Shown: piece after piece, positions 11,313 through 46,236 of the stretch
How the letters are laid out: every line of letters starts with the position of its first letter
How positions within the stretch are numbered: position 1 is the stretch's first letter
Source of the DNA: Oculina patagonica
Taxonomy: Eukaryota
Assembly: GCF_052425735.1 (NCBI RefSeq)
Contig: NC_135771.1
Span: 124,001-188,000, forward strand
Direction: 5' to 3'
DNA length: 64,000 nucleotides
Position numbers and translations under genes: made by a program
Notes under the pieces: generated by a model
The model's database searches: none
Told to the model about the DNA's origin: nothing
Seen by the model: only the letters and a program-made list of their open reading frames with translations

Positions 11313-12483
11313 GTCCCAGATGTCGCAGGAGCAGCCTGGTGTGTCACATGTCAAACTCGCGCGAATCACGTGACAAGCATGCGTTTAATGAGTTCCAGTC
11401 CAAACTGAGGCGCCGACAAATGGACTATGATTAAGAATAATAAAAGTAATGTTACATATTTATCTTTTAAACTAAAAATTCAATTTCGCCTCAAGTACAC
11501 AGCTGCTCGACGGACACCACCTTGGTGTTTTGAAGGATAAATGGTTTTTAAGTAGACAAGTATCTTGTTTCGGCGTCAAAAGACTATATTTTTTAGACAA
11601 TGTTGTAGGTAGGACAGAAAAATAAGGAACTCATTCTTTTCTGTGTCATCATCACAAACCGGATATTTTACATGCTCAATCTGCCTGTAGATTTGATGAC
11701 ATGTTTTGGTCTATGTAAAATAATGGCTGTCAAAATAATAACCGCAATGTATAGAAAGACTACAACTTTCATGGTTACGTCAGTAAAAACTTACGATACT
11801 GAACTGATTTTAGTTTTCATGTTGATATCCGGCTGAAGATATAAATAAATTTACCCTCCGGCAAAAGATGTATATTTAAATTACGGGAATTGGGATATTT
11901 CCATTTCGCCCTCAATAAGGGTACAGGAAATGTTAAGAAAATTGTTGACAATTATTAAAGTAGCTAGGTAGATCTTTGAAAATGGTTTTGTAAAATAAGG
12001 GCATCTGAAATAAAAGTGATTATTTTAAGTTTGTCTTGTTTGTTATTTTGTTTTAAATTAGCTGGTAAGAGGTCTAAGGCTTTTCTTTTAGTCTGTTTTA
12101 CTGTGTAAGTTGTGTTTATTTATACAGATGTAACTTCTTGAACCTTTCCCAAGAGTGTTTGTGTTTTTACATTCTGGGTAGTTTGTAGAAGTAGAATTTA
12201 TTTCGAAATGCAAACAATTTTTCTCTGTGATATATATAACGTTCTTTTTAAAATGACCACCACCAACAACAACAACAACTTTTTTCGTACCCAAATTAAA
12301 ATTAGATATGCATCTATATTAAGACATAGTATTCAGAATTTCTAGATCAAAACAACGATAAAGACAAAGTTTACGCGATCAAGTTTGTATAGTCCGGTTT
12401 GAAGTAGAACCTCTGAGATTCTGTTTGTTTTTTCTTACTGGCGTACTTTTCTTGTAAAGTAATGTGATATTTTCGTTTTAATT

Positions 12484-12529
12484 TTACGTCAATCATAAGA
12501 GGCCCCGTGGGACTTATTTATGTATAAAA
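12484..12529 (+). promoter_or_regulatory. Putative core promoter of the DNase gene (CRE-like TTACGTCA and TATAAAA); retained in every unit
   Basis: TATAAAA at 12523-12529, ~60 bp before ATG 12584; TTACGTCA at 12484-12491. Confidence 0.45.
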
Positions 12530-12583
12530 CGCGTTTGGTTCGTTAGGACAGCTTTGTTCATGTGGGTTGTTGGTGAGGGTAAA

Positions 12584-42700: not shown

Positions 42701-43733
42701 GGTCATTTTTATTCTGTTAACGCGTTTCATATCAAGACTGGCTTTTTTTTGCTTTTGCTTCAATGTCGGAGTACAATATCCTTTGTTGCAGGGGAACCAT
42801 CAAAATGGATTTGGAAATAATTTTTAGTAACAAGCCTTAGTAAGGGGAGTGAAAAGCGGACATTTTTTTATAACGAGCTTTTCTCGTACGATAAAATTAA
42901 AGGAAAGAATTGGACGTTGGTACGAGTCTGTCTTGTGTATAGTAACAAAATGTGATTTTGAGGCGTCTATACACTCTATTTAGAGATCCATTTTCTAATA
43001 AATTACCGAATGTTGATTAATTTCAGGCATTACTTGTAAGCGATCACTATCCCGTAGAAATGCAACTTTACTCAAAAGGTAAGTCTCAGTTCATTTTAGG
43101 TTTTTGAATAAACTGATCAATTTCTGTATGTGATATTTGATTCTATTTGATAGCTTCTTTTTTCCTTACATGGTCAACACGACTAACTTGTGAGGTAAAT
43201 ATCTAGCGCAGATTACTGTTAAAAGTTCACCAAAGACAGACAGGTGACGAAAAAATGGAAAGCAAGCCACTTGAGGAAATTATTTTGATTTACCACAACT
43301 AACATTATACAAATGTATGGCAGTAAGTTTGGAATTTGTTTTTTCTTTTCTGACAGAGTTAGCTAAAGCAATGGCTCAAATATCCAAGGCGGTTGAATAC
43401 ACTTATAAAATGAAGCAGCATCCAAGCTTGAGACGATCTACTGTTTATGGAATGAGGAAGAAGAAGGCAATCAAAGATGCAGGATTCAAAGTGGAAACAA
43501 CATACAGTGTGACGTTCAGCAAAGACTTTAAGAGCTTAAAAGAAGCTATGAATGCTATTCGTGTCATAAAAGATAATATGATAAAGGTTAATATGATCTC
43601 TTTTGATCAGACTCAAAATGCAGAGTTCCACCTGAATGAAGTATGGGTAAAGGAAAAGCAAACCGGAACTGTCAAGATTGTTTGTAAAACGTCTCCCCAA
43701 ACAACTTGCTGGATTGCTCTGTTACAAGACTGA
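39743..43733 (+). CDS. Secreted DNase I-family protein, copy 5
   Basis: Exon translations appear identical to copy 2. Confidence 0.92.
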
Positions 43734-44673
43734 TGACAAATCGACAGAATCATGAACGGATTGTTTTTTAAGTTCTAAGCGATTATTTCCTGCTCTTATT
43801 TCGTGGTTCAATTAAAATAAGACTTCTCCGCACTGGCTGACATTACATTTTTTTGTAGTATGATATCATAGTTATTATTCCAACTCCCCTTCCTGAAGTC
43901 CTTCACCCTACCGATCCCCCCTCGCACTTTGCACCCCTCGCTTATTGCACCTCTCACCCCCCCCCCCCTCCTTCCTCTTCTATCACGTTCATTAAAGAGG
44001 CAGCTGATCCTTCCCCCTCCCCTCCGTTACGCTTCCCTGAGAGCAGATAGAGGTAGGTTAGCACTCATCCCCATACGTCAAACTGACATTCCTCTTTCAC
44101 ATGTTCAGTGATGGCTGCCACTGTCCTTACCGTCCAGTCAACCACTGTGATGTGGCTGTGCGCATGCGTAAGGTACCAAATTAAGAAATCATCTAAATGC
44201 ACAAACAAAATGACAATAGAAACTAACCTTTTTTAACAAAAAAAAAATATCTAAAAATAACACGCAAACTGCGGTGATAAACATTACGGACAAACGCATT
44301 GTTAGAAAAAAATAGACCTTTTACTTGACGTTTCGTATGCTTCAACATGCATCTTCAGAAGCTAGAAGAAACCGTTAAAATGAAAGTACAACTAAATTTA
44401 AATTCGAAAAATAACAGGATTGACAGATGACGAAAAACAGATGATGAAAGAGAAAAATAATAATAAATAAAATACAATGAAATAACGATTTGCACAAAAC
44501 AAATTGTGCAAACTAGTAAAGATAAAAAATATAACACAAACAGCGGTAATGGTAAAAAACATTACCGCTGTTTGTGTTATATTTTTAATCAAGTTAGACA
44601 AGTTACGATGGCCTAAAACCGAGAGTCTATATAGTAAAGATACTGAGATTTTCGCTGACACATTATCATTCAC

Positions 44674-46236
44674 CAGGCGCGTAGCTGACGTCAATATTTC
44701 AAACTCGATGGAGTGTAAAATAACAGGTATTTTTAGTCATAACAACAATATTTCCGGAGTTTTGTTAACTTGATACATTTACATACCGGCTTAGTACACT
44801 AAACGTTTTACAAAAGCTTGACGTGTGCTGCAAAGGCATCTCAGGGTAAAAGCTTAAGCCCCCCACCCCTCGGTTCCACCGTCAATGTACTAAAAGCAGC
44901 GTCAAAGCGTCTATATGCACTAAATACACGTATCACCTGGGTCCCCCGAAATTTTATTCCCCGCCTTTCGTCTATTGATACTCCATTTATCAAATCCCGA
45001 ACGCCTGTCAAGGAAATATTTTTCAACGATGGGATTATTTTTTGCGGGCCCAAGAGAGGCCCGCAACCCTAATCTTGACAGTGACCAGCGGATTGCGTTT
45101 TACGCGTGCGCGCCACGTTAATAAAAAGCGAACAGAAAACGGAAGTTGAAAATTTTGTTCTTCCACTAAGAACGATCGGAATGCGAAAAATGTGTCAATC
45201 ACGACAGTTTGTCGTAACACCGGAAGAGAAAATCTGTTCTCCAAGAACAATTGTCATTCTGTCACATGAAAGATTGCAAACATTACAATTTGCAGACGTG
45301 TTTTACGGGTGTTGCTTTTGCGAAAATTTGCTCTGATTGTATCACGCATAAACCACGGCAAAGCAGATGATTCCAAAAACGGTTTTTCTCGAGAAATTCG
45401 TTATAACACTGACAACATAGCGAGTTTATCAACCGAGGAAAATCACATCTCAATTCACACCGCGTGTCCGACTACAGTTCACTAAACTGTCAATCCGACA
45501 AAAGACAACTCTGACTGGTTCGCGGCCGGTTAGCGGCAATTAAGCGTGATTTATCATTAATCGCGCCACGTTAATAAAAGGCGAGCACAACATAGCGAGT
45601 TTACCGATTGAGAAAAATCACATCTCAATTCACACCGCGTGCTCGATAAAGGGTACACTTCCCAAAACGATAAAAACACGCATTCCTTGCGTGACGCGTT
45701 ACTCGGGATAATTGTCTTTTGTCCATTTAATCATTTATTTATCGACACTGCCATCTAAAATTACTCACTCTCGTACCAGTACCTTTTCTAAGTGCGTCAA
45801 GGCCCGCACTTTCTAACCTGTGGTTACCACTAGTACTACATATAATACTAGGTCACTAGGATATATTGAGGCCACTTACTAACTAATTCACTACAGGACT
45901 ATTCGTAAAGCAAACTTGACAATTGCATCATCCTCGGGTGAAGGCCTTGAAATAGATTGATAATTTCGTCCAGATCGACAGGCATACTGATACTTGATAT
46001 GCATGAGAGCCAGTGAGGAGAGCCCATTCTCCTTACAATTTAATACTTTCCCGATACTTTTAGCGTTTTCTTGCAGGGTAATGTAAACGCTGCGACACTG
46101 CGACGTTTCCCATTCCCCCACTATTTGCTAAAGGCTGAAAATCAACAGTTTGTGTTTTCAGTCCTCCATTATTGACCTCCAAAGGGGGTTCGTTCGAACC
46201 CCTCGAACCCCCCCCCCCCCTCCTCCTACGCGCCTG
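44674..46236 (-). mobile_element. Complete hAT-derived non-autonomous element (1563 bp, 5-bp TSD TTCAC)
   Basis: TIRs CAGGCGCGTAG (44674) and CTACGCGCCTG (46226-46236), with TTCAC on both sides. Minus-strand frameshifted remnant KENGLSSLALMHIKYQ/MPVDLDEIINLFQGLHPRMMQLSSLLYE* resembles the end of a hAT dimerisation domain. Internal direct repeats. Confidence 0.85.

Follow-up and report, generated by a model that had tools for sequence, protein, structure and literature searches.

In humans, the salivary amylase gene AMY1 varies in copy number. Within the DNase I family, the C-terminal extension of DNASE1L3 is merely a short basic helix. In corals, about 30% of the genes in genomes assembled from long reads are tandem duplicates (PMC10236652), and gene copy number differs between haplotypes (PMC12314368); the papers describing these duplications emphasise immune and stress-response families and make no mention of DNases (PMC10236652; PMC12314368), and our literature search found no paper tying DNases to coral tissues. 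The locus described here lies in a window of 64,000 nucleotides from the coral Oculina patagonica (assembly GCF_052425735.1, contig NC_135771.1, positions 124,001 to 188,000), to which all coordinates below refer. It is best explained, with a probability that we place near 65%, as a genuine tandem amplification of very recent date that multiplied a single complete gene in this species.

Layout of the array, its alleles and its flanks

The array spans 12222-46179 on the forward strand (33,958 bp) and is composed of five units of 6785 to 6801 bp arranged head-to-tail, as resolved by self-BLAST and MAFFT alignment of the units: unit 1 at 12222-19022 (6801 bp), unit 2 at 19023-25809 (6787 bp), unit 3 at 25810-32594 (6785 bp), unit 4 at 32595-39381 (6787 bp) and unit 5 at 39382-46179 (6798 bp), all in the same orientation. 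In self-BLAST, 12222-39383 aligns with 19023-46179 at 99.74% identity over 27 kb, and offsets of two, three and four units align likewise. By virtue of head-to-tail units with identical junctions, the array is a tandem segmental duplication; TRF reported no array, solely because of its period limit of 500.

Each unit carries one DNase gene on the forward strand, in which eight exons yield a 1395-nt coding sequence for 464 amino acids, free of internal stops in all five copies. Copy 1 runs from ATG to stop at 12584-16585 (NCBI XP_078353059 / KAL9950211), with exons at 12584-12892, 13689-13777, 13878-13964, 14369-14484, 14827-15094, 15431-15527, 15879-15930 and 16209-16585. Copy 2 (19384-23373) encodes a 464-residue protein 100% identical to the NCBI entry 'deoxyribonuclease-1-like' of O. 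patagonica, from exons at 19384-19692, 20481-20569, 20670-20756, 21157-21272, 21615-21882, 22219-22315, 22667-22718 and 22997-23373, the fifth of which is followed by the GC donor that opens intron 5. The coding regions of copies 3, 4 and 5 lie at 26171-30160, 32956-36945 and 39743-43733, respectively. A TATAAAA motif 61 bp upstream of the ATG and an ATTAAA starting 77 nt past the stop are found in every copy. All five genes are already present in the NCBI annotation of this species. Exact-product look-ups returned no record for the window's own protein, for its Montipora and Acropora orthologues, or for a partial ORF adjacent to the junction, and a single poly(A) RNA run from another taxon (X24) gave zero reads on the DNase gene. 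Two 52-residue cluster members were traced to fungal contigs and are irrelevant to the array.

The differences among units fall into two distinct classes. Units 2-5, which we designate 'beta', show no substitutions whatsoever, introns and repeats included, from which it follows that the amplification is extremely young. In the unit alignment, copies 2-4 differ solely in the lengths of two C runs (C6/C7 and C9-C11). Copy 5 has further indels of its own: an extra T at 41886 (T5/T6), an extra C at 44013 (C4/C5) and a 6-bp insert, AAAGGG, at 45648-45653. Copy 1, on the other hand, departs from units 2-5 at 39 substituted sites and in a small number of indels, every one of them within the first 5.2 kb or so of the unit ('alpha'). 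This head is 0.75% diverged, whereas the last 1.6 kb of unit 1 matches the other units exactly. Six of the differences are exonic, and only one of these alters an amino acid (I144M), the other five being synonymous. In a sequencing run from a near-identical sister taxon (X1, organism A), the copy-1 allele was found at 22 of 22 listed sites, together with both listed indels; on the strength of this match, we regard the 39 differences as marking an older allele rather than divergence after duplication. The X1 allele also has private substitutions at 3 of the 25 listed differences and one private 3-bp deletion. Among independent Logan contigs, one (L019) is 100% identical to beta and another (L018) is an alpha/beta mosaic. 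A search of the assembly for an alternative haplotig of the left flank found none.

To the left of the array, a gene at 3262-11133 (forward strand) is assigned to the oxysterol-binding-protein-related family from signature motifs: an FFAT-like EFFDADEF near 3800, a 12-residue signature near 8145 and EQVSHHPP near 8517. To the right, a DEPDC1-like gene at 46819-51880 (forward strand) contains a DEP domain (PF00610, E 5e-18) on 46819-47610, with further exon-like ORFs continuing to about 51880. A sequence-only reading of the window had anticipated much of this organization. Its five near-identical units of about 6.79 kb were recovered by self-BLAST and unit alignment; the TATA box, eight intact exons and ATTAAA about 80 bp beyond the stop that it assigned to each unit all proved correct, as did its view that copies 2-4 vary in homopolymer lengths alone, and the absence of substitutions from units 2-5 bears out its very recent amplification. 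Its placement of the array between OSBPL9 and DEPDC1 holds to the extent of oxysterol-binding motifs on one side and a DEP domain on the other.

The encoded enzyme and its C-terminal domain

The protein belongs to the DNase I family. Residues 81-329 match PF03372 with a score of 73 bits, where the cut-off is 24.5 (E 3e-20), and residues 76-336 align with the whole core of about 260 residues of bovine DNase I (E 1e-68). In this alignment, bovine E39, E78, H134, D168, N170, D212 and H252 correspond to coral E115, E155, H211, D245, N247, D289 and H329, which we take to share the catalytic roles familiar from the bovine enzyme, and the essential bovine disulfide C173-C209 corresponds to C250-C286. 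Across 19 homologues, each of these catalytic residues and of the paired cysteines is either invariant or conserved at 90% or more. The 19 N-terminal residues are hydrophobic and resemble a signal peptide. As judged from its sequence, the protein begins with a predicted signal peptide, followed by some 50 residues of basic pro-region ending in KKRR, the DNase I core and a basic C-terminal domain of 128 residues. These features support the view that the gene encodes a complete, predicted secreted endonuclease of this family with every catalytic residue in place. The earlier description of a complete secreted DNase I gene is supported as to completeness and family; the additional pro-region and C-terminal domain distinguish the product from a plain DNase I.

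The C-terminal domain has a pI of 9.7. AlphaFold2 (pLDDT 87.7) predicts an alpha/beta fold for its roughly 128 residues, which include two conserved cysteines. Among solved structures the domain found no match, and its only significant fold match was to the C-terminus of a model of the Lingula DNase-1 (TM 0.69); a protein-atlas feature search returned nothing usable for it. Assignment to the DNASE1L3 type was considered and rejected, as the modelled 128-residue alpha/beta domain occupies the place of the short basic C-terminal helix by which that type is recognized. We flag this conserved domain of invertebrate DNase I enzymes as uncharacterised.

The junction, copy number and origin of the array

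The point at which one unit meets the next is precisely defined. There are exactly four copies of the junction string ATTGACCTCTCTGTGA, at 19016, 25803, 32588 and 39375; in the first of them (19016-19031, forward strand) the breakpoint falls between 19022 and 19023. The start of the unit has two base pairs, TC, in common with the right flank, and these constitute a microhomology. The right flank opens with the exact letters that were seen as loose ends behind 19024, which places the end of the unit inside a repeat. The unit tail contains a high-copy interspersed element of about 790 bp (24677-25466 in unit 2, no strand assigned), present at the equivalent position in every unit; a genome-wide first look gave 1708 candidates, and 35 of the 40 that were scored lie elsewhere in the genome at 93-96% identity. 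The remainder of the tail, from this element to the unit end, is likewise repetitive, and word depth reaches 1e4-1e5 over 17400-19022.

Sequencing runs were compared over 17400-23399 (6000 letters, comprising junction and gene), with DNA runs examined as contigs. A 60-mer built solely from junction-spanning words occurs in runs X4 (2025) and X25 (2017), which come from separate studies. In both, contigs cross the junction with 0 differences (18995-19794 in X4, 18995-19510 in X25) and extend into the repeat up to the limit of junction-specific words. Both runs bear one and the same species label (organism B) and were flagged as possible sources of the assembly, so that their independence from it is probable rather than proven. 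The sequence-only reading had named the junction's absence from raw reads among the outcomes that would refute it; junction words and contigs in X4 and X25 refute a pure artefact. In X10, from the same sample as X4, neither of two sampled junction words was found, and the exact junction pattern was absent from JGI metagenome contigs. The single sister-taxon run X1 yielded no junction words and no junction contig; its 2120-nt contig instead comprises 1331 nt unlike the unit tail, followed directly by the unit start. Because the junction occurs in both organism-B runs and is absent from the contig layout of X1, the array is supported as lineage- or haplotype-specific.

The origin that we propose is a single non-homologous join, with the 2-bp TC microhomology, between repetitive DNA 2.4 kb downstream of the stop and a site lying 361 bp before the ATG, which would have created the 6.8-kb unit. 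Unequal crossing-over among units would then have multiplied them on a single haplotype lineage, beta. As the older allele, the alpha head of unit 1 may have entered the array through ordinary recombination or through a haplotype switch by the assembler. Copy number of the array probably varies between chromosomes, and a higher dosage of an extracellular nuclease would be the expected effect. The roles suggested in the sequence-only reading, among them mucus clearance, extracellular-trap turnover, digestion and venom, are hypothetical.

The most serious competitor concedes that the duplication is real and holds that its extent is overstated, with only two or three units per chromosome and an assembler that looped through identical units too often. 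We consider this unlikely, yet it has the depth of X4 on its side. Depth in X1 is about 90-101 over this locus, which is single-copy there, that of the unit in X4 is 91-97, and the X4/X1 ratio in repeat bins is 0.55-0.94 across 17400-18999; rough normalisation to the repeat gives about 1-1.8x single copy, not 5x, for the X4 unit, although the normalisation may not be valid for the library type of X4. The missing junction words of X10 point the same way, and units 2-4, alike but for homopolymers over more than 20 kb, exceed the span of accurate reads of 15-20 kb, so that such reads cannot fix the count. On the opposite side, X4 yields one unforked contig from junction to unit start and lacks alpha variants, as expected if junction paths far outnumber the flank path; this topology suggests that the junction path is dominant. 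The unit-specific homopolymer lengths and the private 6-bp insertion of unit 5 also argue against repeated looping through the same sequence, and assemblers usually collapse identical tandem units instead of expanding them. The indirect arguments on copy number thus conflict, contig topology favouring many copies and repeat-normalised depth about 1-1.8x. The share of words found in X4 was 0.77, against 0.87 expected if alpha-specific words alone were missing, and from this nothing was concluded. A literature search found no paper describing the method of the O. patagonica assembly. We infer the exact count of five units from the assembly as it stands.

A second alternative is an old array homogenised by gene conversion, in which identity would reflect concerted evolution rather than recent amplification. 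The identical tail and 0.75% divergent head of unit 1 do imply some exchange between units or alleles. Even so, this explanation is very improbable: the four beta units lack substitutions even in introns and repeats, and the sister taxon, close as its few private changes show it to be, has a flank-to-unit contig in place of the junction. The near identity of the units, and the caution about over-expansion in the sequence-only reading, could also be taken to mean that O. patagonica has a single copy of the locus and that the whole array is an assembly artefact. This has a negligible chance of being correct in view of the clean microhomology at the breakpoint and of spanning contigs without differences from two studies.

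A recent amplification of this kind, if its copy number is real and variable, would offer a clean, datable case of within-species dosage change of a secreted enzyme in corals. The breakpoint is simple, lying at a 2-bp microhomology inside a repeat, and the junction can serve as a PCR-typable marker in invasive coral populations. A far more speculative extension, which we hold to be improbable, is that copy number at the array segregates as an adaptive polymorphism in an invasive, Vibrio-challenged coral. Colonies with more copies would then secrete more nuclease degrading chromatin or extracellular DNA into mucus or the gastric cavity, with consequences for colonisation by biofilms, resistance to pathogens or digestion of prey, and the conserved basic C-terminal domain would be a module, new among invertebrate DNases, that targets the enzyme to DNA or matrix.

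Comparison with known systems

With vertebrate DNase I (bovine and human DNASE1; PDB 1DNK, 9FJU) the coral protein shares the endonuclease/exonuclease/phosphatase fold, the catalytic residues and the essential disulfide; it differs in its KKRR pro-region of about 50 residues and its 128-residue C-terminal domain, and in lacking the non-essential C101-C104 disulfide. DNASE1L3 (DNase gamma, PDB 7KIU; match E 4e-63) likewise belongs to the DNase I family and bears a positively charged extension at its C-terminus; in the coral protein, unlike DNASE1L3, this extension is modelled as a domain of alpha/beta type and about 128 residues. The coral architecture recurs in 'deoxyribonuclease-1-like' proteins of 430-480 residues in Acropora, Montipora, Nematostella, Hydractinia and Lingula, which have the same core and C-terminal domain at 39-65% identity. 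As far as the protein match table shows, there is no sign in these cnidarians and this brachiopod of a near-identical array comparable to that of O. patagonica.

At the level of the locus, human AMY1 offers an analogy, in that dosage of a secreted hydrolase would likewise be increased through a young, variable tandem array, the link from copy number to expression and phenotype being hypothetical in the coral. The array shares with other coral tandem duplicates (PMC10236652; PMC12314368) a head-to-tail, lineage-specific and probably haplotype-variable character, and stands at their extreme young end, its beta units being free of substitutions. It is a new example of a known phenomenon: corals commonly carry tandem gene arrays of recent origin, and the five genes of this one are already publicly annotated.

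Structure of the array and its genes

Comparison of the window with itself aligned 12222-39383 to 19023-46179 over 27 kb at 99.74% identity, with further alignments at two-, three- and four-unit offsets, and resolved the region into five head-to-tail units of 6801, 6787, 6785, 6787 and 6798 bp. The junction string occurs exactly four times (19016, 25803, 32588 and 39375), and the window contains no N runs. The near-identical five-unit array recognized in an earlier, sequence-only reading is therefore present in the assembly, as is the predicted restriction of differences among copies 2-4 to homopolymer lengths: among units 2-4, variation is confined to two C runs (C6/C7 and C9-C11). 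Unit 5 shows additional differences (T5/T6, C4/C5 and a 6-bp AAAGGG insertion). In unit 1, all 39 substitutions and the few indels fall within the first 5.2 kb, and the last 1.6 kb is identical to the remaining units. A poly-C tract in the region of window position 23597 and at equivalent sites (alignment columns 4589-4602) measures 13, 10, 9, 11 and 12 across the units; these unit-specific lengths represent either real slippage marking each unit or leftover long-read homopolymer error. The window spans 124-188 kb of a chromosome-scale scaffold, which places the array only ~136-170 kb from a scaffold end, possibly in a subtelomeric setting of the kind that favours unequal exchange.

On the forward strand of every unit, eight exons form a 1395-nt open frame encoding 464 aa, preceded by TATAAAA 61 bp upstream of the ATG and followed by ATTAAA starting 77 nt past the stop codon, much as had been described (a TATA box, eight intact exons and ATTAAA at ~80 bp). 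The seven introns are GT-AG, except intron 5 (21883-22218 in copy 2), which is GC-AG with the donor GCAAGT in all copies. Copies 2-5 encode one identical protein, from which copy 1 departs at a single residue (I144M), its gene also showing five synonymous changes. A database search matched the 464-aa protein at 100% identity to 'deoxyribonuclease-1-like [Oculina patagonica]', for which NCBI holds four identical accessions and a fifth for the I144M copy, and GenBank assigns locus tags ACROYT_G042683-87; the five genes are thus already annotated. For copies 2-5, the RefSeq models (464 aa) retain exon 6, which those in GenBank (441 aa, ACROYT_G042684-87) skip, evidently because of the GC donor. 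In one poly(A) run from another taxon (X24, organism E) no RNA reads fell on the DNase gene; full-length orthologues of other corals occur on ~1.6 kb contigs of transcript-like appearance.

Placement of the array between two housekeeping genes is borne out at the family level by motifs of oxysterol-binding proteins on the left, among them the signature EQVSHHPP, and by a DEP domain (E 5e-18) on the right. Downstream of the DEP-domain gene, a 539-aa single-exon ORF on the minus strand (53350-54969) encodes a polyamine-oxidase-like flavin amine oxidase (PF01593, E 2e-70). Three more distant DNase I paralogues (~55-57% identity in exon 5) lie in tandem on another scaffold, at 1366765-1384758, and one further paralogue, with an in-frame TGA, is found on unplaced contig C975.

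Evidence for duplication and for unit number

Absence of the junction from sequencing data would have spoken for an assembly artefact. From a 60-mer centred on the junction, composed solely of junction-spanning 31-letter words, two words were sampled, and both were present in two DNA runs sharing one species label (organism B): X4 (2025) and X25 (2017, another study). Runs were aligned as contigs to window 17400-23399, where X4 yielded an 800-nt contig (18995-19794) and X25 a 516-nt contig (18995-19510), each with zero differences from the window. To the left of the junction these contigs extend for only 28 nt, a structural limit, since the first junction-specific word (allowing for 2 bp of microhomology) starts at 18995 and high-copy repeat lies to its left. 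At the least, then, the duplication is real, although X4 and X25 were flagged as possible assembly sources and their independence from it is probable rather than certain. The two words were absent from X10, a second run of the X4 sample.

Unit number is less easily settled, as all DNA data came in contig form and the arguments rest on contig layout and repeat-normalised depth, which disagree. In X4 a single unforked contig connects the junction to the start of the unit, and variants of the allele type heading unit 1 (alpha, as opposed to the beta type of units 2-5) are absent. Contig simplification is expected to leave such a pattern where paths of the junction type are far more numerous than the flank path, which argues for many copies. 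On the other hand, X4 unit depth (91-97) resembles that of X1, a DNA run of the near-identical sister taxon, organism A, over the locus, which is single copy there (~90-101). With an X4/X1 depth ratio of 0.55-0.94 in repeat bins across 17400-18999, the unit in X4 stands at ~1-1.8x single copy rather than 5x, which argues for few copies, provided that repeat copy numbers are similar in organisms A and B (almost identical at the locus) and that the library type of X4 does not invalidate the normalisation. The lack of both junction words in X10 points the same way. We are nearly certain that a real tandem amplification exists, and give roughly even odds to a count of five on the sequenced chromosome, where there could be fewer units or even more.

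Allelic history and a probable founding event

In X1, a 2120-nt contig places letters 1332-2112 on 19023-19802, while its first 1331 letters find no match to the unit tail, a pattern that a single-copy locus would give. At a depth of 89.5 it is on a par with the next contig (100.9), which lies wholly within the unit. Among the X1 differences listed over 19196-21963, 22 of 25 coincide in place and base with copy-1 variants (three are private), and both listed insertions are copy-1 indels. Given this coincidence, the alpha head of unit 1 is in essence the allele found in the unduplicated relative, with all change on the beta lineage. Alpha and beta are older allelic lineages, since divergence after duplication should split changes between both, and no split is seen. 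The alpha head may have entered the array through ordinary recombination within unit 1, or through an assembler haplotype switch at the repeat; the switch from alpha to beta, ~5.2 kb into the unit, falls where the repetitive tail starts. A Logan contig from SRR28110921 is beta and one from SRR27962760 an alpha/beta mosaic, so both alleles are in circulation. The mosaic (window 21944-23488) is alpha at the initial four variable sites, then beta at the seven that follow, reflecting either a true recombinant allele or bubble-popping in a sample with both alleles. Among the units comparable as duplicates (beta x4, tails x5) substitutions number zero; the amplification is therefore extremely young, in keeping with the recency first proposed.

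The unit tail is repetitive, with word depths of 1e4-1e5 over 17400-19022 in two runs. It includes an interspersed repeat of ~790 bp (24677-25466, and the equivalent place in each unit) with >1700 first-look candidates genome-wide and, among those scored, 35 copies at other genomic sites with 93-96% identity; joints at 17887 and 18681 in the contig layout mark its boundaries. The first letters of the right flank are exactly the loose ends found behind 19024 in X1 and X25, so that the unit ends inside a repeat running on into that flank. The other breakpoint falls within unique sequence, 361 bp ahead of the ATG, and copies 2-5 retain only those 361 bp of native upstream sequence. The dinucleotide TC is all that both breakpoint ends share, which makes a single non-homologous join, mediated by microhomology, the probable founding event, presumably followed by unequal exchange among units.

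A DNase I subfamily and its setting in corals

The claim of a complete secreted DNase I-family gene is upheld by the full ORF, a Pfam PF03372 match (E 3e-20) and a match to bovine DNase I over residues 76-336 (E 1e-68), secretion being suggested by a hydrophobic, signal-like N-terminus. Counterparts of the bovine catalytic residues and of the essential disulfide are E115, E155, H211, D245, N247, D289, H329 and C250/C286, invariant or nearly so among 19 aligned homologues. Given this complete active-site conservation, extracellular endonuclease activity dependent on divalent cations is to be expected. Between signal peptide and DNase core lies a basic pro-region of ~50 aa (residues 20-68; 19441-19587, forward strand, copy 2) ending in KKRR; KRR, KR or KLR at the same position in homologues suggests proprotein-convertase processing. 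The C-terminal domain (residues 337-464, 128 residues; 22997-23373, forward strand, exon 8 of copy 2 and the same exon in every copy) is basic (pI 9.7), has two conserved cysteines, and is predicted by AlphaFold2 to fold with good confidence (pLDDT 87.7). It matched no solved structure, its sole significant match in AlphaFold DB being the C-terminus of a Lingula 'deoxyribonuclease-1' model (TM 0.69). Homologue alignment finds this domain kept in corals, sea anemones and hydrozoans, which rules out a new gene fusion; the gene therefore belongs to a DNase I subfamily that is conserved among marine invertebrates and bears an additional, uncharacterised domain. Its roles may include clearance of mucus or biofilm eDNA, digestion, trap turnover or venom, none favoured by the present data.

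The five genes were already in public annotation and tandem duplication in corals was already known; the interest of the array is modest. Neither of the two coral studies considered here mentions DNase (PMC10236652, PMC12314368). Tandem duplicates make up ~30% of the genes in long-read coral genomes (PMC10236652), and haplotypes differ in copy number in phased Acropora assemblies (PMC12314368). Correct as an observation, the array is an event of a kind ordinary for corals, caught at its youngest stage and in a gene family that earlier work had not singled out.
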